A DNA stretch of 64,000 nucleotides from Heteronotia binoei (taxonomy: Eukaryota): positions 72,292,001 to 72,356,000 of the forward strand of contig NC_083236.1 in the NCBI RefSeq assembly GCF_032191835.1, in the 5' to 3' direction. Shown in pieces: positions 234 to 62,900 of the stretch. Under the pieces are notes generated by a model that saw only the letters and a list, made by a program, of their open reading frames with translations, made no database searches and was not told the origin of the DNA. A program made the translations under genes and the position numbers. The number at the start of each line of letters is the position of its first letter. Position 1 is the stretch's first letter.

Positions 234-3200
234 GGGGTGGGGGGGCTCCCTCCTTGGTGTTCTGCCCCCCCCGGGTAAGTGCATGTGCAATACATCGCCT
301 CTCCTTTCCCGGTGTAGTGCACGCTGCGTGGTCACTGTCTGGCTATGCCTGGCAGATGGTCACTGCAATGGCCTCTCCTACATTACTGCATCCGTGGCAA
401 CACCTTCTCGCTGGTCCCCCCCGTTTTCACAGAGTTTGCCACGTCATGGTGCTACCGAATGTCCGGCGGTATAACCGGATGGGCAGGCTGCGCTCACCAA
501 CCTCGCCAGCCAAGAGAAAGAAAACTCTAACATCAAGCCCGGGCAGACAGAGCTCGTTAATGTAACATCTACCACCTGGAGGACTCTCTGCCGGCATCCC
601 GGCTTACTGGCCATGGCAGATGACCCCATGGTGAAAGGGTGGAGCCAGTACTGCGCACACTGCGCTTCACCTAAAAATTCTTCTGCGCAGGTCTGAAAGG
701 TATCCACATCCACAACCCACAACATACCAAGTCCTGCAGCGATGGGCAAGGGGCGAAACGGCAGGTGGAAGATGCCACTGGAAGCCGCAGTCCCGATCCT
801 GCATGTAGGCGGTTCAGGGTATTGGTCGCCTGATGCTGACCCGGAGACGAAAGCATTTTTTGGCAGCACCCTGAACGACCAAGCAGCCTTATTTAGGGAC
901 AGCACTGCTTGCTCTGTATGGAGAGGGGCCTAGAAAAGGTGGCCTAAACAAAGCTCATCTCCCCCCCCCCCCCCACTTGGATAGCCGCGGTCAACGGGCA
1001 TCCTTACTTGCGGTTGAAAAATAACAACAAAGAAAAGGCATGCACCTGCCTCACAAAGTGTGCAAAGACTAAAGCTTGCTTGTTGGAACATCAGAACCAT
1101 GCTTGACACAGTAGACAGTGGTCGCCCTGAACGACGCTCTGCTCTAGTTGCCCACGAACTTCTCAGGTTGAATATTGAAATAGCAGCTCTCAGTGAGGTC
1201 CGTTTCCCTGAGGAAGGTAGTCTTCAAGAACACGGTGCTGGCTATACCCTTTACTGGTCGGGTAAGTCAAAGGCTGAGAGCTGCCTTTCTGGCGTTGGCT
1301 TCATGGTCAGGAATTCCATTGCCTCTAAATTCGAAAACCTGCCAACAGGTCACTCGGATCGCATCATGTCTATGCTCCTCCCTCTTCAAAACAAGCAGCA
1401 TGCAACACTCTTCAGTGTGTATGCCCCAACCCTTCAAGCAGATTCTGCAGAAAAGAATAAGTTCTATGCTGATCTACGCAACCTCGTACGGAAGACCCCT
1501 ACGGAGGACAAGGTGATCATCCTTGGCGACTTCAATGCCAAAGTAGGTAAAGACTCGGAAGCCTGGAAAGGAGTACTTGGCAAACACGGCATTGGCAACT
1601 GCAATGATAACGGGCGCCTCCTGCTAGAATTCTGCACAGAGCATCAGCTCACCATTACCAACATTATCTTCCAGCAGAAGAACAGTCTGAAGACAACCTG
1701 GATGCACCCACGGTCCAAGCATTGGCACCTTATTGACTACATTCTGGTGCGCCAGAGAGACCTTCGAGATATCTTACACACCCGAGTAATGCCCAGTGCA
1801 GAATGTCATACGGATCATCGTCTTGTACGCTGCAATCTCCGTCTTCACTTTAAATCTACACTCAGGAGAGGCGGTATCCCCCGGAGGAAGTTTCAGGTCG
1901 GCAGCCTTCAGTCAGCCGAAGTTAGAGCTGCCTTCCAGGCAAAACTCCAGACAAGAATTGAGGGCCCCAGTTGCCTCACAGATCCTTCTCCAGAAGCAAT
2001 CTGGGAACACCTAAAAACTACCATCCTGTTGACTTCTGAAGAAGTCCTCGGGTTCTCCACAAGGAAGAACAAGGACTGGTTTGACGAGAACAATCAAGAG
2101 ATCCAAGAATTACTGGTGAAAAAGAGATCTGCCTACCAAGCACATCTTGCTCAGCCCTCCAGTCCTGGGAAAAAAGCAACCTTTCGCGCTGTATGTAGCA
2201 ACCTCCAGCGCAAGCTTCGAGACATTCGGAACGAGTGGTGGACCAAGCTTGCTGAGAGAACCCAGCTGTGTGCAGACACTGGTGATTTAAGAGGGTTCTA
2301 CGAAGCCCTGAAGCAGTATATGGTCCATCATATCAGGCTCAGAGTCCCTTGCGTAGTGCAGACGGCCAAGTGCTCCTCACAGACAAGGCATCCATACTGA
2401 ACCGGTGGTCGGAGTATTTTCAGGTTCTCTTCAGTGCCAATCGCGTAGTTCAAGATTCAGCAATCCACCTCACCCCACTTCAACCAGTGAAAACAGAGTT
2501 GGATGAGATCCCCACCCTAGAAGAGACTGTTAAAGCCATCAAGCAACTGAAAAGTGGCAAGGCAGCGGGAGTTGATGGAATCCCACCAGAGATCTGGAAG
2601 CATGGGGGCATAGTACTACATAGCACTCTTCACAAAGTACTTGTCACCTGCTGGGAACAAGGCAAACTACCACAGGACTTTCGCGATGTAATCATCATTA
2701 TTCTACATAAGAACAAAGGGGAAAAGTCAGATTGCTCCAACTACCGGGGGATAACCCTGCTCTCCATCGCAGGCAAAATCCTTGCTAGAATACTCCTGAA
2801 CACACTGGTGCCACCATTGCAGAAGAACTCCTCCCAGAGAGCCAGTGTGGCTTTAGAGCTAGCAGGAGCACCACCAACATGGTATTTGTTCTCAGGCAAC
2901 TCCAAGAGAAATGCAGGGAACAGAACAAGGGTCTATATGTGACTTTTGTCGACCTTACCAAAGCTTTTGATACCATTAGCAGGAACGGCCTGTGGCAAAT
3001 CTTGGAATGTTTAGGATGTCCCCCAAGGTTCCTCAGTATGGTCATCCAGCTACATGAAGACCAGCGAGGCCAAGTTAGACACTGCAACGATCTCTCGGAG
3101 CCCTTCCCAATAGGCAGAGGTGTAAAGCAAGGCTGTGTTCTCGTGCCAACTCTTTTTACGATCTTCTTTAGCATGATGCTTCAAAGAGCCGCAGTAGATT

Positions 3201-4308
3201 TAGATGACGACGATGGTGTCTACATCCGCTATCGCACCGATGGCAGCCTGTTCAACCTGAGGCGACTAAAGGCCCACTCCAAGACAGTGGAAAAACTTAT
3301 CCGAGAGCTACTGTTTGCTGATGATGCTGCACTTGTCTCCCACTCGGTATCAGCTCTGTAGCATATGATGTCCTGCTTTGCAGAGGCTGCCAAGCTATTC
3401 GGCCTAGAAGTTAGTATGAAGAAGACAGAAGTTCTCCACCAGCCTGCACCCCAGGAAGATTATCACCCTCCTTGCATCACTGTGGGTGAATCAGTTTTGA
3501 AGACAGTCCAGCAGTTCAGCTACCTGGGGTGCATCATCTCCTCAGACGCCAAGATCGACAAGGAGATTGACAATAGACTGGCAAAGGCAAGTCTATTGGC
3601 CGACTGCATAAAAGAGTGTGGAGCAATAAGCATCTGAAAAAGGGCACAAAGATCAATGTTTACAAAGCGGCTGTGATGACAACCCTCATCTACGGCTCCG
3701 AATCGTGGGTATTATACCGTCATCATCTGCCACTCCTTGAGCGCTTTCATCAGCGCTGCCTTCGCACCATCCTCAACATCCACTGGAGTGACTTTGTGAC
3801 CAACACTGAAGTCCTCAAGCGGGCGGAGGTTACAAGCATCGAGGCACTGCTGTTGAAGACGCAGCTGCACTGGGCAGGGCATATCTCCAGGATGGAAAAC
3901 CACCGCCTTCCCAAGATTGCCCTGTATGGCAAACTTTCCACCGGCCATCAAAATAGAGGGGCACCAAAGAAGAGGTACAAGGACTCCTTGAAGAAATCCC
4001 TTGGCACCTGTCACATCAACCATCACCAGTGGTCTGACCTAGCCTCAGATCGCAAAGCATGGAGGCACACCATCCACCAGGCTGTCTCTTCCTTTGAGGA
4101 CGCACGCATAGCTGGTCTTGAGGACAAAAGGAGATTGAGGAAGAATCGTACTGCTACAGCACCAACCCCAAATCAGACTTTTCCCTGCAGCCACTGTGGC
4201 CGGACCTGCCTGTCCCGCATTGGTCTTGTCAGCCACCAGCGAGCCTGCAGCAGACGTGGACTACTGCACCCTTCTTAAATCTTCATTTGCGAAGTCAAGC
4301 CGAGAGAG
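234..4308 (+). mobile_element. Full-length RTE-clade LINE (APE endonuclease, reverse transcriptase, C-terminal C2H2-like finger), inactivated
   Basis: ORF pieces 1060-2400 (ACWNIRTM, AALSEVR, YAPT, ILGDFNA, IDYILVR, TDHRLV), 2349-2942, 2879-3361 (VDLTKAFD, GVKQGC, LFADD) and 3616-4278 (CSHCGRTCLSRIGLVSHQRAC) are separated by frameshifts and a stop. (GA)n tail. 13-bp TSD AGATCTGCGAGTG at 221-233 and 4309-4321. Confidence 0.93.
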
Positions 4309-8237: not shown

Positions 8238-11200
8238 CTAGGTCTTCCTGAATGCCACGCGGCTGTTCACGTTCTCTTCTCCGTATTTAGCTCTAAGCTT
8301 GCTTCTGAGATGATCGTCGCCTGCCAGCAGGTCGAGGTCATCCTGCCTGGTCCAAAGAGGCAGGCAGTCCTCTGAAGGCGAGCCAGTCTGCTGCAGACAG
8401 TGGGCTACGGCCGTGACTTCCCCACTGGTTTTCAGAAATGCTTGAGTCACGGTGGCCAGGTCCACACCAAACTCTTCCATGAGGCGTTTCATGTCTTCAA
8501 TTGCCGCTGCCACCTGCTCAGAAGGCCCAGAAGACGGGCTCCGAGGGACATCAGAACCTTCACTGGATGGGGCCCCTCCCAGCCGGACTCTGGGACTCCT
8601 TGGTGCTTCTTCCGATGTTCTGAGCTCAGGGTGTTTCAGGAGCATGCCCCCTGAACGGCTTGTGCTCTCGCTTTCCAACTAGAAGGGAGCCAAAGAAGAA
8701 CGTTTCAGGATGAACACGAGCTGTTTCTTGGTGGGATTCAGAATAACGCCATTGGCCCTTGTCCCCAGGAGACGCAACACCACTTGCAGAGCCCCACACT
8801 CCTAATGACACCATCCGCTGAAAGAGCTGCACCCCCCCACCCCCGTGCAGGTTCTGGAAAGAGAGGGTGCTTGCCTCAGCAGAGCCCACTCACTCACTGG
8901 GGCCTGGGGAGGGAAGAGGCAGAGGGGAGCAAAGGGCACACGGGCTTCCCCCTGCAGGAGCCTGTTGCGGCCGGACGAGCCTCAGAGCAGGACCCACCTG
9001 GGCACACCCCCTTCCCATTCCTTGCCAACTGGGGACTGTTTCTCCAGCTCAGGGGAGAATGAACAGCCAAGGCCTTCTGCCTCCTGCCAAAGGAAAAGCA
9101 ACGGATATTCAAGGCTTCCCGCTGCAGATGAATGCTGTGAGCCAGCCAGCCAGCCAGCAGTGGAGTCCCTCTGCATCCCTCTCAGCCTTGCCATACTCTC
9201 TGCAACACGAGGCTCAGGAAACCGGAACACTGCAAAGGCAGCACCCAGAAGAGAGCACGCAGGCTGTGGAGAAAGGGGTGCAAAACCATCCTCACCACTG
9301 CCCGTCCCTCCCCATACCTGTCCCTTGCGTGGCTGCTGCAGCGGTGGTTTTACTCTCTCTTCTCTGTGGCCAGCACCCTCTCTTCCAGGCAGCTTCCTGG
9401 GGTCTGGCACGAGAGCCCAGAGGCAGAGGAGAAGGGTGTTGGGCCCTAGATTTCCACGCCTGGCATAGGGCTGGCAGCTCACCTGTCTGCCAGCAGCAGC
9501 TGTTTCAACCACTGGTGGCCACAAGACCCACTGAGCAATGTCCCTTCCCTTGCTTCCTTAAAGCAAGGGCAAAGAGGACTTGGGGACATGGGGCTCAAAA
9601 GAGCCAACCTGACTTAGCCAGCATCAGCACATGCTGCGCACTGACTGTTCACAGCCCCGAGGGAGAAAGCCTGTGATTAATTAAGTAGCAAACACAGGGT
9701 GGAAGATGGAGACAGACATGGGGAGAAAATCTCTTTTAAGACAAGCTTCAAAAGCAAGAAGTCACCTTTGACAACTTGTTGTAAGAAAAAATACAGAACC
9801 AATGAAAATGACAAGTTTCATCTTTCTGTATTCCAACATCACAGATGATCTATATACTAATAGCCAAATCTCTGGATAATTGAATCTGTGGCTCAGGCCC
9901 ATTTACAAAGAAGTAAAAAATTTCTGCAAACTCTGGAGACTCCCCAGGCTTGCAGAAAAATCTTAACGCAAGAAAAAAGGCTGGGGGGAGGTGTACTACA
10001 GGCCCTAGAAATGGCAGCAGAGCTGCTGGAGGGGAGCGGAGGAAGGACTGTCCCTCCTATCAGCAGCTGGAGGAAAAAGATGGCTGGGCGGGAAGGAACT
10101 CTGGCGGCCTGCGGATGGGGGGGCTGCTCCACCCACCAGCAGCGCTCTCAAGAGGCAGTTGTGGCCCAGCTGAAGTCTGGGCTGAAAAGAGATGGCCAGG
10201 GAACCACATGGCAGCAACCCCCAGGGGCGGTTGGCAGCAGCAGGAGCTGGGAGAGTCCTGGGGAAGGAAGGGGGCAACAGCAGGGCAGCTTGGATGGGCA
10301 GGAGGGGGAGCGGTGCCCACTATCTGAAGCAGCTTCCTGGGAACCCCAAGAAGACAGCAGCCCCCCAGAGAACCATGACGCACTGGTGCAGAGAGGACTG
10401 GGGAGGCAAGCAGTGAGGAGCCCCCCCCCATGAATTCTGGAATGCAAAGAAAACAGGCAGACAGGTGGCAGCGGGTGGGGGGGGGGGGAGAGGAGCAGAA
10501 GAAAAGGAATAACAGTGTGGAAGGGTAAAAGTCTGACAGCAAGAGTGAAGTGAAATAGAAAAGAGACAAAGAGAGAAAAGGAATAACATTGAGTACGTTT
10601 GGAGGATTCATTGTGATATAGAAAGAACTGAAAATAAAACAATATCACAATGCCATGGTATTTATGGTAGATAATCCAGCTCTCGCAAAGGATATTGTAG
10701 AGCAGGAGTGGCCAAACTGTGGCTCTTTCACACATACAGTGTGGCTCTTGAAACCCCCACTATCCTGTTGGCTGGCTTGGAGAAGGTATTTGTCTCTTTA
10801 AATCACTTCTCTGAGCCAAGTCAGCCAGGGTCCTAGAGAACACAAAGTTAAAGTTGCTTTCTTTCCATCTCTTCCTTCCCCCATCTATTTGCCTGCCTTC
10901 CTGTCTTGCAACTCTCAAACATAGGATGTTCATGTCTTGTGGCTCTCAAACATCTGACATTTATTCTACGGGGTTTTTATGCTAAGCAAGTTTGGCCACC
11001 CCTGTTGTAGAGTCAACAAGGGTACTCTAGAGAGCACTTAAAATTTTCTGGAGTTAAACCATTCCCCGTTTAGAAAGGTGGAAGGTGCGGGGCATTAAAC
11101 ATACAGCGGCCATAGTCTGCAATGTCACATACAAAAGCAGAACAAGTGAAATGAATGAGCACCTCGCTGCCTTCAAATTCTTGATTAGCCAGCTGGAAAA

Positions 11201-11281
11201 TGCTAGGTGCCTTTGATCCTTCTGCGGAGCACCTTTGATCTTCTTGCTGGGGTACGTCCATTGCTGTCTTTCTTTGTGGTG
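8238..11281 (-). CDS. TERF2IP: TERF2-interacting protein RAP1, exons 2-3 only (C-terminal RCT domain); exon 1 not found
   Basis: Last exon 8678-8238 (TAG acceptor, phase 0) encodes MKRLMEEFGVDLATVTQAFLKTSGEV...PLWTRQDDLDL...KYGEENVNSRVAFRKT*, matching the RAP1 RCT domain. Exon 11281-11163 (119 nt, CAG acceptor, phase 1 to 0, GTGCTC donor) encodes ...IFQLANQEFEGSE. Head-to-head with KARS1 as in human. Confidence 0.9.
10703..11004. mobile_element. Non-autonomous hAT DNA transposon
   Basis: TIRs CAGGAGTGGCCAAAC / GTTTGGCCACCCCTG. Perfect 8-bp TSD TTGTAGAG (10695-10702, 11005-11012). Confidence 0.85.
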
Positions 11282-11384
11282 CTGTTAAAGAGAGTGGCAT
11301 AACCATAAAAAAAGGCTTCTAGCTTCAAAGAGTGGCTGTGTGGAGCTGTAATAGAAGACTTAGATTTGAATACAGGTGCACCTT

Positions 11385-11660
11385 AGAATCATAGAGCTGA
11401 AACTCACAAATACCTCTTCACACACATACACAGTGTGACCCCGGCTCCATGGCCAGAAGACGGCAAAAAAGAAAAAGAAGCGAACAAAAAAACCCCCTCC
11501 AGGATCCCTGGGGCCAAACTGGCCTGGAGAAAGGCTGCCTCATCCCGAAGTGGCAAAGAGCATCTCCCTGGGCGTGCGAGAAAGGGCCATGAGAACTAAG
11601 CCCTGGGGCAGCCTTTCCTGCCCTCCTTCTCAGGACCTGCCCAAGGTCACAGGGTCCTCG
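11385..11660 (-). mobile_element. CR1 LINE 3'-end fragment
   Basis: TAGAATCATAGAG terminus; body is similar to the CR1 3' fragments at ~24585-24745 and ~40070-40530. Confidence 0.6.
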
Positions 11661-11673
11661 TTTCTCTTAGGTA

Positions 11674-14600
11674 ACCATCCAGCCCCTGCTTGAAAACCTC
11701 CAGGGAAGCAGAGCCCGCCCCCCACCTCCCGGGGAGGAAGCCTGATGGAAACAGGGAGGGAAGGGACCTCCGGGGTCATCCAGTCCACCCCCCTGCAAAT
11801 GCAGGAATCCCACCAATCCCCCCCCTACATTCACAGGGCCCTCCTTGCTGTCAGGCGGCCATCCAGCCCCTGCTTGAAAACCTCCAGGGAAGCAGAGCCC
11901 GCCCCCCACCTCCCGGGGAGGAAGCCTGATGGAAACGGGGAGGGAAGGGACCTCCGGGGTCATCCAGTCCACCCCCCTGCAAATGCAGGAATCCCACCAA
12001 TCCCCCCCCTACATTCACAGGGCCCTCCTTGCTGTCAGGCGGCCATCCAGCCCCTGCTTGAAAACCTCCAGGGAAGCAGAGCCCGCCCCCCACCTCCCGG
12101 GGAGGAAGCCTGATGGAAACAGGGAGGGAAGGGACCTCCGGGGTCATCCAGTCCACCCCCCTGCAAATGCAGGAATCCCACCAATCCCCCCCCTACATTC
12201 ACAGGGCCCTCCTTGCTGTCAGGCGGCCATCCAGCCCCTACTTGAAAACCTCCAGGGAAGCAGAGCCCGCCCCCCACCTCCCGGGGAGGAAGCCTGATGG
12301 AAACAGGGAGGGAAGGGACCTCCGGGGTCATCCAGTCCACCCCCCCCCGCACAATGCAGGAACCCCACCAATCCCTCCCCCTACATTCACAGGGCCCTCC
12401 TTGCTGTCAGGCGGCCATCCAGCCCCTGCTTGAAAACCTCCAGGGAAGCAGAGCCCGCCCCCCACCTCCCGGGGAGGAAGCCTGATGGAAACAGGGAGGG
12501 AAGGGACCTCCGGGGTCATCCAGTCCACCCCCCTGCAAATGCAGGAATCCCACCAATCCCCCCCCTACATTCACAGGGCCCTCCTTGCTGTCAGGCGGCC
12601 ATCCAGCCCCTGCTTGAAAACCTCCAGGGAAGCAGAGCCCGCCCCCCACCTCCCGTGGAGGAAGCCTGATGGAAACGGGGAGGGAAGGGACCTCCGGGGT
12701 CATCCAGTCCACCCCCCTGCAAATGCAGGAATCCCACCAATCCCCCCCCTACATTCACAGGGCCCTCCTTGCTGTCAGGCGGCCATCCAGCCCCTGCTTG
12801 AAAACCTCCAGGGAAGCAGAGCCCGCCCCCCACCTCCCGGGGAGGAAGCCTGATGGAAACGGGGAGGGAAGGGACCTCCGGGGTCATCCAGTCCACCCCC
12901 CCCTGCAAATGCGGGAATCCCACCAATCCCCCCCCTACATTCACAGGGCCCTCCTTGCTGTCAGGCGGCCATCCAGCCGCTGCTTGAAAACCTCCAGGGA
13001 AGCAGAGCCCGCCCCCCACCTCCCGGGGAGGAAGCCTGATGGAAACGGGGAGGGAAGGGACCTCCGGGGTCATCCAGTCCAGCCCCCCCCCCCCTGCAAA
13101 TGCAGGAATCCCACCAATCCCCCCCCCCTACATTCACAGGGCCCTCCTTGCTGTCAGGCGGCCATCCAGCCCCTGCTTGAAAACCTCCAGGGAAGCAGAG
13201 CCCGCCCCCCACCTCCCGGGGAGGAAGCCTGATGGAAACGGGGAGGGAAGGGACCTCCGGGGTCATCCAGTCCACCCCCCCCCCTGCAAATGCGGGAATC
13301 CCACCAATCCCCCCCCTACATTCACAGGGCCCTCCTTGCTGTCAGGCGGCCATCCAGCCCCTGCTTGAAAACCTCCAGGGAAGCAGAGCCCGCCCCCCAC
13401 CTCCCGGGGAGGAAGCCTGATGGAAACGGGGAGGGAAGGGACCTCCGGGGTCATCCAGTCCACCCCCCTGCAAATGCAGGAATCCCACCAATCCCCCCCC
13501 TACATTCACAGGGCCCTCCTTGCTGTCAGGCGGCCATCCAGCCCCTGCTTGAAAACCTCCAGGGAAGCAGAGCCCGCCCCCCACCTCCCGGGGAGGAAGC
13601 CTGATGGAAACGGGGAGGGAAGGGACCTCCGGGGTCATCCAGTCCACCCCCCCCCTGCAAATGCGGGAATCCCACCAATCCCCCCCCTACATTCACAGGG
13701 CCCTCCTTGCTGTCAGGCGGCCATCCAGCCCCTGCTTGAAAACCTCCAGGGAAGCAGAGCCCGCCCCCCACCTCCCGGGGAGGAAGCCTGATGGAAACGG
13801 GGAGGGAAGGGACCTCCGGGGTCATCCAGTCCACCCCCCCCCTGCAAATGCGGGAATCCCACCAATCCCCCCCCCTACAGTCACAGGGCCCTCCTTGCTG
13901 TCAGGCGGCCATCCAGCCGCTGCTTGAAAACCTCCAGGGAAGCAGAGCCCGCCCCCCACCTCCCAGGGAGGAAGCCTGATGGAAACGGGGAGGGAAGGGA
14001 CCTCCGGGGTCATCCAGTCCAGCCCCCCTGCAAATGCAGGAATCCCACCAATCCCCCCCCCTACAGTCACAGGGCCCTCCTTGCTGTCAGGCGGCCATCC
14101 AGCCGCTGCTTGAAAACCTCCAGGGAAGCAGAGCCCGCCCCCCACCTCCCGGGGAGGAAGCCTGATGGAAACGGGGAGGGAAGGGACCTCCGGGGTCATC
14201 CAGTCCAGCCCCCCTGCAAATGCAGGAATCCCACCAATCCCCCCCACTACAGTCACAGGGCCCTCCTTGCTGTCAGGCGGCCATCCAGCCGCTGCTTGAA
14301 AACCTCCAGGGAAGCAGAGCCCGCCCCCCACCTCCCGGGGAGGAAGCCTGATGGAAACGGGGAGGGAAGGGACCTCCGGGGTCATCCAGTCCACCCCCCT
14401 GCAAATGCGGGAATCCCACCAATCCCCCCCCCTACAGTCACAGGGCCCTCCTTGCTGTCAGGCGGCCATCCAGCCGCTGCTTGAAAACCTCCAGGGAAGC
14501 AGAGCCCGCCCCCCCCTCCCGGGGAGGAAGCCTGATGGAAACGGGGAGGGAAGGGACCTCCGGGGTCATCCAGTCCAGCCCCCCTGCAAATGCGGGAATC

Positions 14601-16870
14601 CCACCAATCCCCCCCCTACATTCACAGGGCCCTCCTTGCTGTCAGGCGGCCATCCAGCCCCTGCTTGAAAACCTCCAGGGAAGCAGAGCCCGCCCCCCAC
14701 CTCCCGGGGAGGAAGCCTGATGGAAACGGGGAGGGAAGGGACCTCCGGGGTCATCCAGTCCAGCCCCCTGCAAATGCAGGAATCCCACCAATCCCCCCCC
14801 TACATTCACAGGGCCCTCCTTGCTGTCAGGCGGCCATCCAGCCCCTGCTTGAAAACCTCCAGGGAAGCAGAGCCCGCCCCCCACCTCCCGGGGAGGAAGC
14901 CTGATGGAAACGGGGAGGGAAGGGACCTCCGGGGTCATCCAGTCCACCCCCCTGCAAATGCAGGAATCCCACCAATCCCCCCCCTACATTCACAGGGCCC
15001 TCCTTGCTGTCAGGCGGCCATCCAGCCCCTGCTTGAAAACCTCCAGGGAAGCAGAGCCCGCCCCCCACCTCCCGGGGAGGAAGCCTGATGGAAACGGGGA
15101 GGGAAGGGACCTCCGGGGTCATCCAGTCCACCCCCCCCCTGCAAATGCGGGAATCCCACCAATCCCCCCCCCTACAGTCACAGGGCCCTCCTTGCTGTCA
15201 GGCGGCCATCCAGCCGCTGCTTGAAAACCTCCAGGGAAGCAGAGCCCGCCCCCCACCTCCCAGGGAGGAAGCCTGATGGAAACGGGGAGGGAAGGGACCT
15301 CCGGGGTCATCCAGTCCAGCCCCCCTGCAAATGCAGGAATCCCACCAATCCCCCCCCCTACAGTCACAGGGCCCTCCTTGCTGTCAGGCGGCCATCCAGC
15401 CGCTGCTTGAAAACCTCCAGGGAAGCAGAGCCCGCCCCCCACCTCCCGGGGAGGAAGCCTGATGGAAACGGGGAGGGAAGGGACCTCCGGGGTCATCCAG
15501 TCCAGCCCCCCTGCAAATGCAGGAATCCCACCAATCCCCCCCCCCTACAGTCACAGGGCCCTCCTTGCTGTCAGGCGGCCATCCAGCCGCTGCTTGAAAA
15601 CCTCCAGGGAAGCAGAGCCCGCCCCCCACCTCCCGGGGAGGAAGCCTGATGGAAACGGGGAGGGAAGGGACCTCCGGGGTCATCCAGTCCACCCCCCTGC
15701 AAATGCGGGAATCCCACCAATCCCCCCCCCTACAGTCACAGGGCCCTCCTTGCTGTCAGGCGGCCATCCAGCCGCTGCTTGAAAACCTCCAGGGAAGCAG
15801 AGCCCGCCCCCCACCTCCCGGGGAGGAAGCCTGATGGAAACGGGGAGGGAAGGGACCTCCGGGGTCATCCAGTCCAGCCCCCCTGCAAATGCGGGAATCC
15901 CACCAATCCCCCCCCCTACATTCACAGGGCCCTCCTTGCTGTCAGGCGGCCATCCAGCCCCTGCTTGAAAACCTCCAGGGAAGCAGAGCCCGCCCCCCAC
16001 CTCCCGGGGAGGAAGCCTGATGGAAACGGGGAGGGAAGGGACCTCCGGGGTCATCCAGTCCACCCCCCTGCAAATGCAGGAATCCCACCAATCCCCCCCC
16101 TACATTCACAGGGCCCTCCTTGCTGTCAGGCGGCCATCCAGCCGCTGCTTGAAAACCTCCAGGGAAGCAGAGCCCGCCCCCCACCTCCCGGGGAGGAAGC
16201 CTGATGGAAACGGGGAGGGAAGGGACCTCCGGGGTCATCCAGTCCACCCCCCCCCCTGCAAATGCGGGAATCCCACCAATCCCCCCCCCTACAGTCACAG
16301 GGCCCTCCTTGCTGTCAGGCGGCCATCCAGCCGCTGCTTGAAAACCTCCAGGGAAGCAGAGCCCGCCCCCCACCTCCCAGGGAGGAAGCCTGATGGAAAC
16401 GGGGAGGGAAGGGACCTCCGGGGTCATCCAGTCCAGCCCCCCTGCAAATGCAGGAATCCCACCAATCCCCCCCCCTACAGTCACAGGGCCCTCCTTGCTG
16501 TCAGGCGGCCATCCAGCCGCTGCTTGAAAACCTCCAGGGAAGCAGAGCCCGCCCCCCACCTCCCGGGGAGGAAGCCTGATGGAAACGGGGAGGGAAGGGA
16601 CCTCCGGGGTCATCCAGTCCAGCCCCCCTGCAAATGCAGGAATCCCACCAATCCCCCCCCCCCTACAGTCACAGGGCCCTCCTTGCTGTCAGGCGGCCAT
16701 CCAGCCGCTGCTTGAAAACCTCCAGGGAAGCAGAGCCCGCCCCCCACCTCCCGGGGAGGAAGCCTGATGGAAACGGGGAGGGAAGGGACCTCCGGGGTCA
16801 TCCAGTCCAGCCCCCCTGCAAATGCGGGAATCCCACCAATCCCCCCCCTACATTCACAGGGCCCTCCTTG
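11674..16870. repeat. Tandem satellite, ~28 copies of a 184-193 bp GC-rich unit derived from a CR1 3' end
   Basis: The anchor GATGGAAAC recurs at 11745, 11929, 12113 ... 16579, 16767 (28 counted). Unit length varies mainly through poly-C runs. The unit's reverse complement aligns with the CR1 copy at 62720-62865. Confidence 0.97.
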
Positions 16871-17086
16871 CCATCCAGCCCTGGGAAGCAGCGGTCTCCG
16901 CCCACCTCTTCCGCTCGGAGCCGCAGGAAGTTCTTCCTCAGGGAGCCGGAAGTTCTTTCATCCCCCGACACCCGACTCCCGGCGAGGGAGGGAAGGTGGG
17001 CGGGGCTAGAGGCTGTGCGCATGCTCATAACTCCTCCTCCCCCGCCCACGTGGCTTCCGCTTCCGGGAGCGACCGCTGCCGGCAAG
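16871..17086. promoter_or_regulatory. KARS1/TERF2IP bidirectional CpG-island promoter
   Basis: ETS CCGGAAGT 16946-16953, GC box ~16998-17005, NRF1-like TGCGCATGCTCA 17016-17027, E-box CACGTG 17047-17052, tandem CTTCCG 17054-17066, YY1-type CAAGATGGCG overlapping the ATG. Confidence 0.75.
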
Positions 17087-30594
<13,508 letters not shown>

Positions 30595-32775: not shown

Positions 32776-32802
32776 CCAGCAGGGGGAGGTGGCCAATCCG
32801 GG

Positions 32803-38800: not shown

Positions 38801-41800
38801 ATCTGGCATAATACTTAGTGGGCTGGATTAAGTTTGAGAAGCCTGGTGTCATCCTGGAAAAGATCTGGTGGCCTAGTGTGTGCACACCCCTTCCCCTCAT
38901 AACCTCATTTGGAAGGGCCAGACAGAGGAGCAGGAAGTCACATGCAATGCCGTGAGCTCTGTGGAGGAAAGGTGGGATAAAAATGGCATCGTAAGCACAA
39001 TGACAGGAACAGCTGAATAGCAGCCACCAAAGGGGGGCTCTGCATGCTTCATCCTGATCTCCTCCAGGTTTTGGACAGCCAGCTTATGCTTGGGAAACCT
39101 CTGCTGCTTGCTGACTGTCCTGCAGAGGTGGCAGGGTTGATCGTGTTCCTCTTGTCCTTGTGATGCATATTGGACAGGCCACCAGCTTGGTTGTACCCCA
39201 AAGCCCCCAAACTTTGACTTACCTTCGGTCCACCTGGGGTGTGTTGTGGGGCCTCTTGAAATTTCCTTTCTGTACCCCTTGAGGCAGGCAGCAGAACCAG
39301 TTTTCACTGGAGTGCTTTGTGGAGAAGGGGAAGTCACTCAGGGTGGCCGTTCAGGGCTGAAGCTGAGCCTCTTGGCTTCCTCCCAGAAACAGGCAACTGG
39401 GCTGCTGCATAGTTTTCACAATGGCGGCAGAGCCCCCGAGTGTCTTGATGGTCCCTTCAATGGGCAGAGGCACTGTCCTAATGCCTTGCAGTGGAGAATG
39501 TCCCGCTGCACTCTGGCAGCTCCCCATCAGGGAGGATGTAGCTCAGCAGACCTCAGGATACAGGAAGGGCGGCGGGGGGCAGTGGAGAGGCTGAAATCCT
39601 GGGGTGCTGCAACAGACACGGTGGAGCTCATGGGTCTCTGGCTATCTGTCAAAGGTAAATTGCACACTTGTGGAACCCTGATTTGGATCAGTCAATTAAC
39701 ACTTCTGTCTTTGCTTGGTTTAGTTAAAACCAGCCCCTTCCCCAAAATGTTTATTAACATTATAAAGGGAAGAAAGAAGGAATTTGATCTCTCTTTTGGC
39801 AGGTCTCGGATCTGCAAGGTAGAGCTATTCCATGAATTCCTGAAGATAGTGGCCCAAATTCCACAGGAGAATTTGCCAGGAACTCTCAGGTGGGAAAATC
39901 CTTCTGACTGGTGTGTTCTGGGTTTCCCTGGCCCGGGAGGGTTGCCTTTGTTTCCCTTCTCCCCATCTTGCCCCCCTCCTGTCCTTTCCTCCTCTATATT
40001 GCAGTTAAAGATGGGTGTTTTTAGGGAGCAGGCTGCTGCCACCATTCCTGTGCTCCACTTAGAAGAGATGTCCAGGATCATCTAGTCCAACCCCCTGCAC
40101 AATGCAGGAGAGTCACGTGCCTACCCCCAACCCCACCCCCAGTGACCCCTGCTCCATGTTCAGAAGGTGGCAGTAAGCCTCCAGGATCCCAGAGAAAACC
40201 TCCAAACTGGCCTGGAGAAAAATTGCTGACTGATCCCAAAATGTCGATCCCTAGGTGTGTAAGAAAGCCATGAGAATTAAGCACTTATGCAACCCTTCCT
40301 GCTCTCCCTTTCATTATCTGCCTAAGTTCACAGAGTCAACGTTGTTGTCAGGTGGTCCTCTAGCCTCTGTTTGAAAGCCTCTAAAGGAGCCCACCACCTC
40401 CCAAGGAGGCTTGTTCCACTGATCTTCCTGATGTTGAGCCAGAAACTTTTTAAATTTACTTTCAACCCATTGGTTTTGGTCTGACCTCCTGGGGCAACAG
40501 AAAACATTTCCACGCCATCCTTGTGGCTTGTCTTGGCAGGAACCAGCTCTGCATAGCTGCAGGCTTATCATAAGCGTTCCAGAAATGCAGATCTTTCTCA
40601 GCCTAGGAAATGGCTTGGGGCAGTTTGGCTCCTGCACCATCTGGAAGCTGGAGAGCCCAGGCCTGACTTCGATGCTGTGAGGGCAGTGCTTGTACTCTGC
40701 TGGCCAGGTGTCCGTTATGCAACTGATACATCCTGTCCCCATCATGTCCCCCCCAGCAGTTTGGCAATTTCCTGTGGAATTCTTAGAGTCTGTTGCTTGT
40801 TTCCCCTCTGTCTCTGTCCAGGAAAATGGGACTCAGTTGGTTTTGAGTAGAACCAGCCTTTCCTCCCTTTGACGGGGCCCGGGGGCTTAGTTCAGCAGAG
40901 TTCCCCAGTGGGTTGGGCCTTGATCACAGCAGTTCAAGAGCTCCGCGTGCAGTTGGCTGATCTTGATTTTCAAAAGGCTGCCTCCCCACTTGGCTCTGGC
41001 AGTCTCCCCCTTCTTTTGGCTGCCTTCTTTTACAGAGGGCTGGCTGAAATCTGTCATAGCTCCGGTGGGGAAACATGTTATAAACTGGATGCAGCTGGTG
41101 TGTGCCAGATGCTGTTTGATCATGTCCCCACAGGGTGGGCACAGACCCCTCATTTTCTTTGAACATGAATGTATGTAGTCTTTTCATGCATGCAAGGGTA
41201 GGTAGAGGCTTTCAGAGACAGCCAACAATAACTTCTTGCAGAAAGCACACCGAAGGGAATATCACAAGCATAGCAGTTAAGAAGAGGAGGAGATTGGAGT
41301 CATGTCCCACCTTTCACTCAGAGTCTCAGAGTGGCTTACAATCTCCTTCCCTTCCTCTCCCCACAATCAGCCCCTTGTGTGGTAGGTGGGGCTGAGAGAA
41401 TTGGGACCGACCCAAAGTCACTGAGCTGGCTGCATGTGGAGGAGTAGGAGATCAAACCCTGTCTGCTGCTCTTAACTGCTGCACCACACCGATAGGGATA
41501 GCCCTGCTGGATCAGAGCAGTAGTCCATCTAGTTCGGCATTCTGACACAAAAAAGCATGGACGCTGAGGCCTTCTCCTGACATCTCCTGGTATCAGTATT
41601 CAGAGTCTTACTGCCTCTAAATGTGGTGTCCTTGAGTCACCAGGGATAACATCTGCTGATAGAGCTCTCATCCATGAATCTGTCTCATCCCCCTTTAAAG
41701 TCATCTATACCTGTGGCCATCGCTACTTCCTCTGGCAGAGAATGCCACATATTAATGGTTCTGTGTAAATAAGTAAATAAAGAAGAGCCCTGTGGCGCAG

Positions 41801-43581: not shown

Positions 43582-45029
43582 GTTCCACACATGCTGCAGG
43601 GCTCTCGATAAAGAGGTTGGCTCCTCAGCTCAGAGAATCATATTTGATGCCCCTTCAATTGTAGACACTGAAGAACAACAAAAAGAGGCACCAAAAGAGG
43701 TGATTCTTCAGTCTGCTGTTTTGAACCAAGGGAACTCGCCTAAAAGCGGAAGCTGCTGGAGAGAAAAGGATGAGATGGGAGTCTCCCGAGTGGCTCACAA
43801 TCTCCTTTCTTTTCCTCTTCCCACAACAGACATCCTGAAGGCTGAGGCAGGTGGGGCCAAGAGAGCTCTGAGAGAACTGCTCTGAAAGAATGTGTGACTG
43901 ATCTGAAGTCATTCAGCAGGTGCATGTGGGGGAGGAGTGGGGAATCAAACCTGGTTCTCCCAGATTAGAGTCTGTGCACTCAACCACTGCACCGAACTGG
44001 CTTTTCGCCAACCTTCAGGTGAAGGAGCTCTGACTGAAGGCACCTGCCAGGGGTGGCAGCAGCAGCACCTCCTGTGGGGGGAGAGGCTGGCCCCAGGCAA
44101 GCAGAGGCTGGCAGGTATCCGGCTCCCACTTCTGAGAGTTGCCGGTTTGACTTGTGCGTTCCTCGAGCTGTTCCCCAAGTGAGTCAGAAGAGCCATTCCA
44201 GCTGCTTTTAGCACAGTTGGGACCCTGCCTTGCCATGTTTAGGTGCCTCCTTATTCCTCACAAAGTTAAGGCTCTGCTGAACTCGGGAGGCCCAGAAACA
44301 TGACCCAGTGGGCCCTGTTTGTTTCCTTCATGTTCTGAAGCTGGGTGCGGCAGGAAGGAGCCCCACGCTTGGCTGAGCAGAATTCCCACCTGCTTTGTTG
44401 AGTCTGGGTGGAGGTGTTGAGAACACAGCCTCTGGCATGCCTCCTGGGGCAAGAGCAGCCGCTAGAAGCCCACTGCAATGCCTCCCTCACCCAAGCACGA
44501 AGAGGTGGAGGCTCCAGGTTCCCTGGGCCTGAGCCTTGGCTCTGACATCTGACATTTCTCAAGGGCTGTGCACATTTTGTGATGTCGAAAGCCCATGTGT
44601 CCTGCAGCTGGTTGCTGCAGAAACAGCAGTTGCCATATTAAATGGAAAACAAGCTGCTGCTTCACGTTGGGGCTTTGAAAAGAGAGAGATCATCCTGGAC
44701 ATGCATGCACATCCACCAGGGTGTCCAGTTGCCCCCACTCTGTTGCTGGCAGGCTGCCTTGGCGTGGGGGTCACCACTCCCCCTGCAGGCAGAGGCAAGA
44801 GGGCATCTCCTTTCCTGTGTCACGGCCCAGAAGCGCTGCCTGGTGCCAGCCTCTCTGTCAGCTAGGGAGGAGGCTCCAAGCAGCCCAGGGCACCCTGTGT
44901 CCACCCTGGGAAAGGAGGAGGCCGACCTGTGAGATGCACAGGGAAGCAGGGAGGGAGGGGGTACCACAAGTGGCAGTCTACCTCTGTGGGGTTTATTTTG
45001 GGGGGAGGGTCCTTTGTTAATAGAACCAC

Positions 45030-48000
45030 CGAGTTGGAAGGGGCCATAGAGGCCATCTAGTCCAGTCTCCTGCTCAAGAGCATCCCAGACAAGTGTTCAT
45101 CCAACCACTGCTTGAAGACTGCCAGTGAGGGTGGGGGCGCTCACCACCTCCCTAGGTAGCTGATTCCACTGTTGAACAACTCTGACTGTAAAGACAATTT
45201 TCCTATATCCAGCTGATACCTTCCCATCCTAGACCCATTATTGTGAGTCCTCTCCTCTGCTGCCAACTGGAACAGCGCCCCGCCCTCCTCTTGAGTGACA
45301 GCCCTTCAAAGACTTTAATTAAAGGGAGCAATCCTGTCCCCCCTCTTCTCCCAAGTCCCTCAGCCTTTCCTCCTCAGAGGCCCCTGGTCATCCTTGTCGC
45401 TCTCCTCTGCATCCGCTCCATTCTGTCTACATCCTTTTCGAAGCGAGGCCTCCAGAACTCCAGGTACAGCGGGACTGTGACATCTTGCAATGTGGATGTT
45501 ATGCCTCTGTTGATACACAAGATTGCAATTGCCTTTTTTGCTGCTGCATCACACTGGCTGCTCATATTTAACTTACAGTCCCCCCATACCCCAAGATCTC
45601 GTTCATCCAGTATGCATGTTGCTCATTTTGCCCACTTTCCCAACATGTTCAGATCTCGCTGAATTCTATATCTTTTGGTGTGTTCCCTACTCCTCCCAAT
45701 TTTGTGATATCTGCAGATTTAATGAGTAGCCTCTCCACATCCTCATCCAGATCATTTATAAGAATATTTAAAAGTACCCTGCCCAGAACCAAGCCCTGTG
45801 GCACTGCACCGGACTCCTCCCTCCACTGAGATGAAATGCCATTGACAACTACTCTTTGAGTGCAGTTCTCCAACCAGTTCCCTATCCACCTAATTAGCCT
45901 AGAGTCCAGTCCATGATCTTCTAGTTTACCCATCAGAACATCATGAGGAACCCTGCCCGAAGCTTTACTGAAATGCAGGTACACAACAGCAACAGCATCC
46001 CCTCGACCCAGGAAGCTCGTGACTCAATCAAAGGAGGAAATGAGGTCCTGGCAGAACCTGTTGGGGACAAATCCGTGCTGACTTCCTCAGATCACCAAGC
46101 AGTCCTTTAGATGCTCACAGATTGATCCCTTTAAAATCTGCTCCAGTATTTCCCCTGGGACAGAGATCAGACTGACTGGCCTCTAGTTTCCTGGGTCATC
46201 CCTCCACCCTTTTTTTGAAAATGGGGATAACATTTGCCCTCCTCCAGTCTTGTGGCATGTCTCCCGCCCTCCAATAGGTCTGGAAGACGATGGACCAAAA
46301 GTTCTCTAGAGACTTCTTTGAGCACTGGTGGGTGCATGCCATCTGGCCCGGGGGATTTGTACTCATTCAATGCAGCCAGGGGCTTCTCAGCTTTCTCTCT
46401 GCCCATGTCAACCAGGCAGCTTGGACGCTGTGCCTTGCCCACTCCCATCTCTAGATGAGCCTGTTCGCTTCTTCAGGGGGAAATCTGAGGCAAAATAGGC
46501 ATGAAGCTTTTCAGCTTTCTCTGTCCTCTGTCCAAGTTTCTCCATTTCCACCCAACAGTGGGTGTTGTAGCGAGCCTCCCTGGCCAGCTTTAGCGCAGTG
46601 TGCTTTGGCCTCTCCAACGGCTGACCTGCAGTGCCTACAACCCATCAGGCCTCAGAGTCAGTGGAGCTCCTGAATCTCTGAGAGTTCCACCTCCTTCTCC
46701 ATTGAATAGTAGGTGCAGCTGCATAACAATCCCTGGATGAGCTCCACCACCTATTTTTCTACAAAATGACCCCTGCAACCCATAGATACTCTTCTTTAGA
46801 GGTATGTCCTTGCTTCCATTTCTTGAACATTTCCCTTTTCTTCCCCCTTAGCACATCATGGAGCTCTGTCTTGGATCCCTACCAGGTTTCCTTCTTGTTG
46901 GAACGGCAATACCTTCAGCTTGCAAGACCTAAATAAAGTGCACAGTTGTATCATCCCAAAACCATCCCCCCCCCCCCCCCGGCGGTCTGTAGAAAAATTG
47001 TCTTTCACAGAGCTGGTCCTTGGTGCCAAAAAGGTTGGGGACCACTGGCCTAAAGCACCTGACAAATAATCATCCAGCTGTGTTTTGAAGACTGTCAATG
47101 AAGGAGGGCTTCCTAGGCAGCTGGCTCCACCTCTGATCTCTGTTAAAAAAAATTTTTCTTAATATCCAGCCGGTACCTTTCTGCTTGTAATTTGAGCCCA
47201 TTGCTTCGAGTCCTATCCTTGGCTGCCAAGTGGAACAGCTCCTTGCCCTCCTCTAAATGACAGCCTTTCAAATATTGAAAGAGAGCCCTCCTGTCCCCCC
47301 TCAATCTCCTCTTCTCCAGGCTGAACCTTCCCAAGGCCCTCCTCAGCCTTTCCTCAGAGGGCTCTTCCTCCAGGCTCTCTTCTGCACCCGCAGCCGTTCA
47401 TGAGCAGCAGTTCCACCACTTCATGTTTATGAGCAGCCATTCCACCCCTTCATCCAGATCATTGAAAAAAATGTTGAAAAGAACTATGCCCAAAACAGAG
47501 CCCTGCGGCACCTCTCTGGACACCTTTTTGCAATCTGACGAAACTCCATTGACAACCACTCTTTAGGTAGTCCTCTCCACTGAACTGTCCTATAGTCCAG
47601 TCTACAGTCCTCCAGGCTGCCCATCAGAATGTCACGGGGAACTGTATCAAAAGCTTTACTAAAATCCAGGTAAACCACATCAACAGTGCTCCCGCAGTCC
47701 AAACTATGCTTGCAGCTCCCATCACCTCCTGTTACAGTGAATTCCAAATATTAATCACCTTTTGGGGAAGAAGTACTTCCTTTTATCAGTTCTAACCTGA
47801 CTGCTCGGCAATTTCATTGAATGTCCAAGAGTTCTCATATTGGGAGAAAAGTGCCACTATCTCTACCTTCTCTATCCCATGCATAATCTTGTAAGCCTCT
47901 ATCATGTCTCCCCTCAGTCAATGTTTCTCCAAGCTAAAAAGCCCCAAACGTTTTAACCTTTCTTCATAGGGAAACTGTCCCAACCCTTTAATCATTCTAG

Positions 48001-59900: not shown

Positions 59901-62900
59901 TAAAATGAATTTTAACAGGGATAAATGTAAAGTTCTGCATTTAGGTAGGAAAAATCCAATGCATGGTTATAGGATGGGGAAGACTTGTATTAGCAGTAGT
60001 ATGTGTGAAAAGGATCTAGGGGTCTTAGTGGATAATACGCTGAACATGAGTCAACAGTGTGATGCAGTAGCTACAAAGGCCAATGTGATTCTGGGCTGTG
60101 TCAACAGAAGTCTAGAGTTCAGATCCGGTGAAGTGACATTGGGTTTTTCCTACCTGCATGGTTATAGGATGGGGAAGGCTTGTCTTAGCAGTAGTATGTG
60201 CGAAAAGGATCTAGGGGTCGTTCAGCCCAATCCAGAGAGCTGCTGTGTAGCTGCGCTCGAGTGCAGAACTAGCGCCTGCGGCCATAGTTGGCTCCCAAAG
60301 GAAAGACATTTCGAGGGGGAAGAGCGGCCTGATGAGCGAGAGAGAACCCTTTGCCATGGTGATTCTGCCCAGGCGCACGCCATTGGCCTGCTGCTGAGGC
60401 AGGGGTGGGGGAGGCACAGGCTCGCGCGGGACCACGGGATTGGCCAGCCCATTGTACGTGACCGGACGAGGGGACAGAAAGCCTGTGCCTGAGAGGCCGT
60501 CAATCCCCCCGCTCCCTCCCGCTGTCAGAGACTCTGCCAATGGCAGGCAGAGGCATGCGTAGACAAGCAGGAAGTCCCAAGTGCAGGAGTTCGCTATCCT
60601 AGACAGCGGCTGGAGTGTGTGTCTGGGAGTGGCCAGACCACGTCCGAAAGACACCACCACCCAGAGCCCTCCCCCGGTGTTGCCCTGCTGTCACCCCCTG
60701 CTATGTGCAAGGAACACCTCCCCTGGGGGCCGCAGAACTCAGAGTGCGAGCTGCTGGGCATGCATCCACTTCAGCAGCACCCTCCCCAGTGCCCTGCACA
60801 CAACAGCCCTGTGCGGTCGGGTAGGCCGTCAGCCCGGGCAGGCTGAAGGGAGCCACTCCCCCTCCCCTGTCCAGCCATGAGGGGGGCAGTGTGGCGGCTC
60901 ATAGCCCATTTCCCCCCACCCCAAGAACCAAGTCTGCCCACCCTCCCAGGCATTCCCTTGGAGAGGCCACTGACAGGGGGGGTTGCCCTGGGAATGCGCA
61001 GCAGATGCCAAGCAGGAGAGACAACAGAGGGCACAGCTCAGACTTTATTTTTTCAGAACAGAGTGCAACAGTTTCCCTGGAGCGCGCTGGGCAGTCTCGC
61101 CGTGGGTGGGGCTGCATTCCAAGTGGTGGGCAGAAACAGCTGAGGGAGTGGGGGGGCAGTGGAGTGACACACATGGAAGCCTCTGTGCTTGAGTCCCACC
61201 TGCAAAACAGAGACAGAAATCAAGAGCACCTGCAGGGGCGGTAGCTGGAAGAGCAAGCAGTTTCAGCCGGGCGCTCTCTTAAAGGGACAGTCTCTGACCC
61301 GCCTCCCCGCATCGGGGCAGCTGCCACCACCCCTCCCATGCCCTTCCAGGGGATGGGAATGCGGCAGAGGGCAGACCAAGGGAAGCAGGCAGCAGCACAG
61401 GAGAGCGGGCTCAGCCAGTGCCAACTGCCTGGTTCAAGTGCCAGGGACGCTCACACACCAAGCAGCCAAGAGCGAGGGAAGGGGAGGGGGAGGACGGGGG
61501 GGGGGGGACAATGAAACTTATCCAGCCGTGGGCGACCGTCCTCACTCACATGCAGAGCCTCCAGAAGCCCAGAACCAAGAGCTCTCCCCCTCGCAAGTCA
61601 AAGCTACTGTCAAAGCAACTGCGCAGTCAACACTCGTCACCAACGTGCCTGCCTGTCCCTCACTCTAAGTCTGTATGGCCGGGAGCTCGCCAGCAGAACT
61701 TCCCGCCATGCAAACCTGTCCCTAACAACTGAGTTGTGTGAGGCAGAGCAGAAGTATTTCTAGGAGGGGGGGGGGGCGATTGGGCGCTGGGGAGGGGGCT
61801 TGCCAGGCCGAGGGGTGAGGGGATTGGTGAGGCAATCACGCCGCTCCCTAAGGGGTTTGCAAGCTTCCGCAGTGGCGGAAGCAACCTTTGTTTTTGGTTT
61901 CAACGAGTGTCCATGGGACACGCCGCTATTTTTGCAGGTGTAACGTTGCGCCTCTCGAGGGAGGGGCGTGTCATGGGCCAAACTGCTCAGGAAGCTGCCT
62001 AAGCCTGGCCGCGCCCCCAACTCCACCCCCTCCTCTGCCTGAGCACCATACTCCGCCTCACTTCCGCCCATGCTCAGGTGCAGCTGCTCTCGGGTGGAGT
62101 GACGCTGGGGTGGCCCCCCGCCCACATAACTCCCCTCCACTGTGGCTGCACTGGTCATACGTCGGTGCAAATGCTTCTGGCGCCCATGTAGCGGCAAGTC
62201 CACTCCCAGAGTGCTTTCAGCCCCCCCCCCCCCCAGATTGTGCTGTTAGTGGATCATACACTGAACCTCAGTCAACAGTGTGATGCGGTGGCTAAAAAGG
62301 CAAATGTAATTTTGGGCTGTATCAACAGAAGTATAGTGTCCAGATCCCATGATATGATGGTATCGCTTTGCTCTGGTAAGACTTCACCTGGAGTATTGTG
62401 TTCAGTTTTGGGCACCACATCTTAAGAAGGATATAGACAAGCTGGAACAGATCCAGAGGAGGGCAACAAAGATGGTGAGGGATTTGGAGACCAAGTCCTA
62501 TGAGGAAAGGTTGAAGGAACTGGGGATGTTTAGCCTGGAGAGGAGGTGGCTGAGAGGTGATAGGATCACCATCTTCAAGTACTTGAAGGGCTGTCATATA
62601 GAGGATGGTGTGGAATTGTTTTCTGTGGCCCCAGAAGGTAGGACCAGAACCAGTGGTTGAAATTAAATCAAAAGAGTTTCCGGCTCAACATGAGGAAGAA
62701 CTTCCCGATAGAGCGATTCCTCAGTGGAACAGGCTTCCTCAGGAGGTGGTGGGCTCTCCTCTCCTTCTTTGGAGGTTTTTCAACAGAGGCTAGATGGCCA
62801 TCTGACAGCAGTGAGGATCCTGTGAATTTAGGGGGAGGAGTTTGTGAGTTTCCTGCATTGTGTGACACAGCAGGTTGAGCCAAAGACAGACACAAGAGGA

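Follow-up and report, generated by a model that had tools for sequence, protein, structure and literature searches.

Satellites derived from transposable elements are well known, and among them are satellites of birds that derive from CR1, a long interspersed element (LINE). In chicken, CR1-derived tandem repeats listed in a review include the HinfI repeat and the centromeric Cen2/3/4/7/11 repeats, which carry CR1-C fragments (PMC6947457), and in the barn owl a satellite DNA, PbaSat02-1308, is reported to be 87% identical to CR1-J2_Pass (PMC13582039). The 3' module of CR1 has itself been described as a hairpin plus an 8-bp microsatellite, ATTCTRTG (Suh, 2015, cited in PMC8665684), and the tails of CR1-L3 LINEs in snakes have been associated with 'microsatellite seeding' (PMC8303610). 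Our literature searches found no description of gecko CR1-tail satellites or of Heteronotia binoei repeats, and no relevant CR1-derived satellite in papers on parrot and duck or in a satellitome paper on the trogon. Here we analyse a window of 64,000 nucleotides from the gecko H. binoei (assembly GCF_032191835.1, contig NC_083236.1, positions 72,292,001–72,356,000, forward strand), in which a 5.2-kb tandem array of a CR1 3' end lies between KARS1 (lysyl-tRNA synthetase) and TERF2IP (RAP1). This array adds a lineage-specific case to those known, and we consider it probable, though well short of certain, that it is a locus-specific, satellite-like array which arose from a founder pair of CR1 copies in the KARS1–TERF2IP interval and was amplified by unequal exchange.

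The chicken repeats resemble the gecko array in that a part of CR1 supplied all or some of the monomer, presumably through unequal exchange at the DNA level. However, some of the chicken satellites sit at centromeres, are much larger and have long composite units, whereas the gecko unit corresponds to exactly the 3'-terminal 184 bp of CR1 and forms a single 5.2-kb euchromatic block in a head-to-head promoter interval. PbaSat02-1308 likewise has a monomer that is recognizably CR1, but this monomer is 1308 bp long and was obtained by satellitome clustering of short reads. As in the snake CR1-L3 elements, tandem repeats have grown from a CR1 3' end; seeding in snakes, however, expands a tail motif of a few bp, while the gecko unit is a 184-bp block with coding sequence, hairpin and terminus. 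We use the term 'satellite' loosely, for one 5.2-kb array in gene-dense euchromatin.

Tandem Repeats Finder (TRF) reports the array as a single one at 11647–16871 of the window, with a period of 184 bp, 28.1 copies, 97% matches and 1% indels; a second period, of 372 bp, scored equally. A reading of the sequence alone (hereafter the sequence-only reading) had placed about 28 head-to-tail copies at 11674–16870, and both the copy number and the span agree with the TRF array except that the true start lies 27 bp further left. Cut at the anchor TCACAGGG, the array yields 28 full monomers of 184–193 bp, nearly all of whose length variation falls within two poly-C runs, and a 19-bp partial copy. The region has a G+C content of 66%, and its plus strand shows a strong skew of C over G. 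Internal junctions between monomers are uniform, …GTTTCCAT being joined each time to CAGGCTTCC….

On average, two monomers differ at 2.9% of their positions, and the matrix of differences has a marked structure (m01 being the first monomer). There are no differences within the sets m12 = m19, m13 = m20 = m26, m15 = m22 and m2 = m10 = m18 = m24, and only one each between m21 and m27 and between m16 and m28, while the mean number of differences is lowest at offsets of six and seven monomers. Identical non-adjacent monomers together with this dip point to the duplication of blocks of DNA after insertion. The array is thus like a satellite in its head-to-tail order, uniform monomer length, high identity and block structure. 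At both of its edges there is a sharp switch from homogenized to diverged sequence. Monomer m01 differs from the array consensus at nine positions in its first ~30 bp and at only one in the other 154 bp; those first ~30 bp are the ORF2 (open reading frame 2) end that adjoins a long untranslated region (UTR), and they run on into the tail of a long-UTR CR1. At the opposite edge, the last partial copy matches the consensus exactly over its 19 bp and then diverges abruptly.

Read on the minus strand, the array unit consists of the 3'-terminal 184 bp of a CR1 LINE, in the order ORF2 end, stop codon, short 3'UTR with hairpin, and terminus. We aligned the unit consensus (minus strand, rotated to start at CAGGCTTCC) with three dispersed CR1 copies near 40, 45 and 62 kb of the window, all of which are genuine CR1 3' portions, in which the conserved coding sequence for the ORF2 C-terminus is followed by a stop codon and by the hairpin of the UTR (…CCTGCATTGTGCAGGGGGTTGGACTAGATGA…). 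The consensus is 78% identical to 62730–62859 over 133 bp (E = 6e-24), aligns with the 40-kb copy in two blocks, 40409–40321 and 40109–40062, the second of which includes the match to a CR1 terminus that the sequence-only reading had put at ~40075–40108, and aligns also with 45152–45036. As a measure of chance similarity we used the local alignment scores of 500 dinucleotide-preserving shuffles of the unit, and in each comparison the unit scored above all 500: 111 against 18.0 ± 2.5 with the 62-kb tail (z = 37), 52 against 19.8 ± 2.6 with the 40-kb tail (z = 12.5) and 40 against 17.2 ± 2.1 with the 45-kb tail (z = 10.7). The sequence-only reading had derived the unit from the terminal ~180 bp of CR1 and had named shuffled sequence as the check on this; the unit is collinear with the CR1 tails, and the claim holds.

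The coding remnant of the unit reads …RLPPREV… and …SLEVFKQGLDGRLTARRAL-stop (also written …SLEVFKQGLDGRL…stop), in two frames with one frameshift. After the stop codon comes a short 3'UTR of ~80 bp that includes the palindrome CCTGCATTTGCAGG. The proposed recognition structure of CR1 comprises the hairpin and an ATTCTRTG-type tail (PMC8665684). In the array the hairpin is intact in 16 of 28 monomers, and since in 11 of the 28 its stem is broken by a T>C change, the recognition structure is not being preserved. The 3' end of the unit, GTTTCCAT, represents one tail motif in degenerate form, to be compared with GGTTCTAT of the 45-kb copy. The natural terminus of the 45-kb copy reads …GGTTCTATTA and the left flank of the array …CTCTATGATTCTA / CTATGATTCTA; the 3' boundary of the unit lies at or next to the natural CR1 terminus. 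No linked reverse transcriptase (RT)/endonuclease ORF, and hence no whole CR1 element, was found at the array, beside which there are only ~90 bp of further ORF2 (16872–16958). The source copies were severely 5'-truncated, and the array is therefore CR1-derived DNA and not an element.

Older CR1 sequence brackets the array on both sides in the same (minus) orientation, a feature which the sequence-only reading had missed. To the right, 16872–16958 begins with a degenerate, internally deleted copy of the first ~70 bp of the unit and continues with AAAGAACTTCCGGCTC..CTGAGGAAGAACTTCC, which matches CR1 ORF2 upstream of the unit boundary; this flank scores 44 against CR1 62560–62770, where shuffles score 15.9 ± 2.2 (z = 12.9). 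As it is ORF2, CR1-derived DNA extends past the array toward the promoter. To the left, 11385–11646 shows homology with the long 3'UTR that the CR1 at 40040–40335 carries (local alignment score 104 versus 19.6 ± 2.6 for shuffles, z = 33). In this long form ~215 bp separate the stop codon from the hairpin, whereas the unit and the 62-kb copy are of the short form. Given a long-UTR left flank and a short-UTR unit, two CR1 subfamilies were involved.

Two other geckos have neither the array nor an interval of this size. Between KARS1 exon 1 and TERF2IP exon 2 lie 5.75 kb in H. binoei; Sphaerodactylus townsendi has 0.80 kb there and Gekko kuhli 1.38 kb, and the orthologous interval of the latter two species contains no match to the CR1 unit. 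The array is thus lineage-specific, and the CR1 pair and the array are lineage-specific additions within the TERF2IP 5' intron or leader.

We propose that the short interval from the shared KARS1/TERF2IP promoter to TERF2IP exon 2 came to contain two 5'-truncated CR1 copies, arranged head-to-tail on the minus strand. The upstream copy, B, would have been the longer one and would have had a short 3'UTR, while the downstream copy, A, would have been truncated at CAGGCTTCC and would have had a long 3'UTR. Such a pair could have arisen when a second CR1, which may prime on tail-like sequence, inserted into the tail of an earlier one, or through a template jump between two CR1 RNAs in one insertion. 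The ~100-bp ORF2 end present in both copies would then have formed direct repeats spaced by the short 3'UTR of B, and an unequal exchange between these repeats, whether by meiotic or sister-chromatid crossing-over or by replication slippage, would have given a 184-bp unit made up of the ORF2 end, the UTR of B and the terminus of B. Repeated exchange would have both amplified and homogenized this unit to 28 copies, with the block duplications of 6–7 monomers among the recent events.

This scheme accounts for the composition of the unit, for the hybrid edge and for the CR1 body at the other end. Moreover, a single founder junction predicts uniform internal junctions at the CR1 terminus, whereas the duplication of a random segment predicts no such thing. 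Some points nevertheless weigh against it. First, the founder dimer and the order of events are reconstructed, and no such dimer was seen in the genomes compared. Second, whole-genome shotgun (WGS) reads of another individual mostly differ from the assembled monomers at three positions. These reads come from two runs with the same species label but from another sample (sampled depth ~0.2–1.4x in unique bins, near zero in GC-rich ones), and were placed on 16500–22400, that is, on two reference monomers and unique flank. At 16707, 17 of 18 reads have T where the assembled monomers have C or G and none has T; at 16826 and 16844 all reads have A and T, respectively, and T at 16844 occurs only in monomer m04. 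Such variants may be differences between individuals that arose by concerted evolution, or may stem from related arrays elsewhere, so that either related copies or arrays exist elsewhere or the array differs between individuals. Finally, an H. binoei locus reached through its TERF2IP protein (GCA_032191835.1, CM063338.1), considered as support from a second assembly, had to be discarded; it aligns collinearly with the window, always at the same offset, and is the same record.

The strongest competitor to a founder pair is a multimer made by the RT itself, in which the CR1 enzyme would have jumped repeatedly during target-primed reverse transcription, each time returning to the RNA 3' end from a point ~184 nt upstream. 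Most copies would then stem from one insertion, and exchange at the DNA level would merely have shuffled them later. We find this unlikely. On the one hand, the unit does end at the CR1 3' terminus and begin at one fixed internal point, and the CR1 3' hairpin with its microsatellite is the proposed recognition site of the RT (PMC8665684). On the other hand, 27 independent jumps at one exact nucleotide are hard to credit, and the identical non-adjacent monomers in blocks of 6–7 indicate that much of the copy number came from DNA duplication. Multimers generated by RT are also expected to share their tail in every copy, including the 3'-most; this is not the case here, as the 3'-most copy of the array continues into a foreign long 3'UTR and not into the unit's own, and this different UTR calls for a second template or a second element. 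We therefore hold a pure RT-made multimer to be less likely than amplification from a founder pair. In a wider form of the same idea, to which we give about as little credence, the CR1 lineage of Heteronotia may multimerize its tails systematically, with RT jumps end-to-end between RNA 3' ends during insertion seeding head-to-tail tails across the genome, from which kilobase satellites would later grow. The KARS1/TERF2IP array would in that case have begun with a jump from the RNA of one CR1 subfamily to that of another.

An import from elsewhere seems improbable to us. In this scenario the 184-bp CR1-tail satellite formed at another site. A solo CR1 fragment already at the locus would have let it in through ectopic recombination or gene conversion, or circular DNA would have reintegrated here. 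The diverged CR1 on both flanks could have supplied the homology, and the reads of the other individual stand 40–60x above single-copy depth on the unit, with variants absent from the assembled monomers. By run, the array bins have depths of 54–65x and 32–35x, dispersed CR1 tails contributing, compared with ~0–1.5x in neighbouring unique bins. Such excess depth and non-assembled variants do imply that related sequences exist elsewhere. However, the pile-up probably consists largely of dispersed CR1 tails and partial read matches (97% of the reads, and in one run 32599 of 33026, were placed on the stretch only in part), and the hybrid edges are already explained by founders and exchange in situ.

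The array might act on the KARS1/TERF2IP promoter as a multimerized GC-box/Sp-KLF platform, an array of G-quadruplexes (G4s) or an insulator between the two divergent genes, but we rate such co-option as quite improbable. Each monomer has a single GGGGCGGG box on its minus strand and, on the plus strand, a single canonical G4 motif, and our motif scan found 30 canonical G4 motifs in the 5.2-kb array versus 32 in the other 58.8 kb, a ten-fold enrichment; moreover, the KARS1 ATG lies 217 bp, and a conserved promoter block ~140 bp, beyond the end of the array. Both the GGGGCGGG boxes and the G4 enrichment belong to the CR1 tail as such, and a functional role for them is a lead only. The same scan found no CTCF-like motif in the array. 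With a CpG observed/expected ratio of 0.29, against 0.78–0.81 in the adjacent CpG island and with a sharp boundary between the two, the array has behaved as germline-methylated, non-promoter DNA. The same promoter works in other geckos that have no array, and the monomer variants, including the disrupted hairpin, look neutral. RNA depth was 1.2–1.6 on the two reference monomers, which collect reads from all 28 copies and from other CR1 tails, versus 5–12 on KARS1 exons; the satellite is not strongly transcribed. We infer that the effects of the array stop at a TERF2IP 5' intron or leader made ~4- to 7-fold longer and at a G-rich, probably methylated block ~130–220 bp from the KARS1 start codon, and that it has no further function.

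That the array or its length is an artefact of mis-assembly in a GC-rich region is very improbable: although the locus is represented by one assembly and the short-read depth does not confirm copy number or junctions, the monomer variants and block duplications are structured and non-random, as they would not be in a repeat that had collapsed or stuttered, the array is at each edge in register with the CR1-homologous sequence that it adjoins, independent WGS reads contain unit-like sequence far above single-copy depth, and an array of 5.2 kb is presumably shorter than typical long reads.

Table 1. Coordinates, within the window, of the array, of CR1 sequence and of the neighbouring genes.
Feature	Position	Strand	Evidence
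Tandem array	11647..16871	-	TRF, monomer alignment, BLAST and shuffle tests, difference matrix
Hybrid edge of first monomer, m01	11647..11675	-	Monomer alignment, flank alignment
Long 3'UTR and terminus (…CAGCTCTATGATTCTA) of the second, older CR1 copy, A	11385..11646	-	Alignment, shuffle test
Diverged CR1 ORF2, 5' of the unit boundary	16872..16958	-	Alignment, shuffle test
Dispersed CR1 3' portion with short 3'UTR, best comparator for the unit	62300..62860	+	Alignment, shuffle test
Dispersed CR1 3' portion with long 3'UTR, comparator for the left flank	40040..40470	-	Alignments, shuffle tests
Dispersed CR1 3' portion with natural terminus (…ccccttccaactcggtggttctatta)	45020..45440	-	Alignment, shuffle test
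Core promoter block upstream of the KARS1 ATG	17012..17087	.	Motif scan, CpG profile, gecko conservation
KARS1 exon 1, coding part	17088..17143	+	Sequence, spliced transcript contig, called gene
KARS1 further exons	17410-17527, 17759-17922, 18963-19058	+	Spliced transcript contig
TERF2IP (RAP1) exon 2, with start codon of the annotated 179-aa (amino acid) H. binoei protein	11163..11291	-	tblastn with gecko and other squamate RAP1; P0114
TERF2IP exon 3 (Rap1 C-terminal domain)	8241..8675	-	ORF list, phmmer, PF11626 on relatives, tblastn

The sequence-only reading had set the array directly against a housekeeping promoter, and the gene to the right is indeed KARS1, its called gene having tRNA_anti-codon and tRNA-synt_2 domains and a spliced transcript contig lying on its exons; its ATG, at 17088, is the one from which the array's distance is given above. 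What that reading had missed is the position of the array in the 5' portion of TERF2IP as well, within the conserved interval that separates the two head-to-head genes. It had likewise overlooked the empty orthologous site of two other geckos and the pattern of block duplication, which points to unequal exchange at the DNA level. The promoter region is the CpG island already mentioned, and in it a block conserved among geckos (Sphaerodactylus, Gekko kuhli) spans 17012–17148. Motifs in the promoter block are GCGCATGC (NRF1-like), a GC box, CACGTG and two CTTCCG (ETS-like), and one more GC box lies just outside it, at 16998. CR1-derived DNA stops at about 16958, some 54 bp from the promoter block and 130 bp from the KARS1 ATG.

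KARS1 itself shows some further features. Between its exons 1 and 2, at 17145–17400, is an alternative exon-like ORF with a CAG run, which we take to be consistent with the mitochondrial-isoform leader of vertebrate KARS1. Intron 3 contains a Sauria-type short interspersed element (SINE) at 18273–18666, on which WGS reads sampled at ~1x pile up to 450–2000x; on account of this depth the SINE belongs to a very abundant family. Reads on it have internal joints at 18456–18597 that go back or skip, which suggests variable internal repeats within the SINE family.

KARS1 and TERF2IP lie head-to-head at ~120–200 bp in Hemicordylus, Rhineura and Sphaerodactylus, and likewise head-to-head in human. The first exon of TERF2IP encodes the BRCT and Myb domains. 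Our positive controls gave matches to it, to BRCT in Hemicordylus capensis and to the end of Myb in Rhineura floridana, but we found no BRCT/Myb-coding exon anywhere in the 64-kb window; the stretch that separates KARS1 from TERF2IP exon 2 likewise gave no match in Sphaerodactylus townsendi, Gekko kuhli and Gekko japonicus (whose sequence has N gaps there). We considered whether CR1 or the array had deleted this exon in H. binoei, and rejected the idea, as three geckos without the array at the locus also lack it. Annotated gecko TERF2IP proteins are 174–209 aa long and have the Rap1 C-terminal domain only, and the start methionine in exon 2 is common to Heteronotia and Sphaerodactylus. Gecko TERF2IP thus appears to be without its BRCT and Myb first exon, which could be a truncation of this shelterin component across Gekkota, or else a hidden GC-rich exon.

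Further repeats were seen in the window. Downstream of TERF2IP, at 1060–4278 (plus strand), lies a long and nearly intact ORF2 of a non-long-terminal-repeat retrotransposon, in pieces of 446, 197, 160, 90 and 220 aa. Its N-terminus resembles an endonuclease, and it has RT-like motifs. Two more tandem arrays occur in the window. One, at 28973–29366, has five copies of 79 bp (94% matches) and is built from the interior of a Sauria-type SINE, namely its tRNA-like/B-box part (…GGGAGAACCGGGTTTGATTCCCC…). The other, at 32034–32780, is GC-rich, with 8.4 copies of 87 bp and additional periods of 175 and 352, and lies in a CpG island (73% G+C) rich in GC boxes (GGGGCGGGG / CCCCGCCC); its location is probably the promoter of the gene downstream of KARS1.

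Taken alone, the array at KARS1 and TERF2IP is an ordinary and probably neutral repeat expansion. Its interest lies in the preserved anatomy of its probable founders and in its position in a conserved bidirectional-promoter interval, which it has stretched from ~1 kb to 5.75 kb and in which TERF2IP transcripts from the shared promoter would traverse 28 sense-oriented CR1 tails. The birth of a satellite is unusually well preserved here, with probable founders at both ends, a unit boundary that coincides with the LINE terminus, and hybrid edge monomers that mark the points of exchange. With empty orthologous sites in other geckos, this anatomy makes the locus a teaching and test case for the passage from transposable element fragment to tandem array. 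Were tail multimerization to prove true of the Heteronotia CR1 lineage, the LINE enzyme would be a direct and recurrent generator of satellites, including at promoters.

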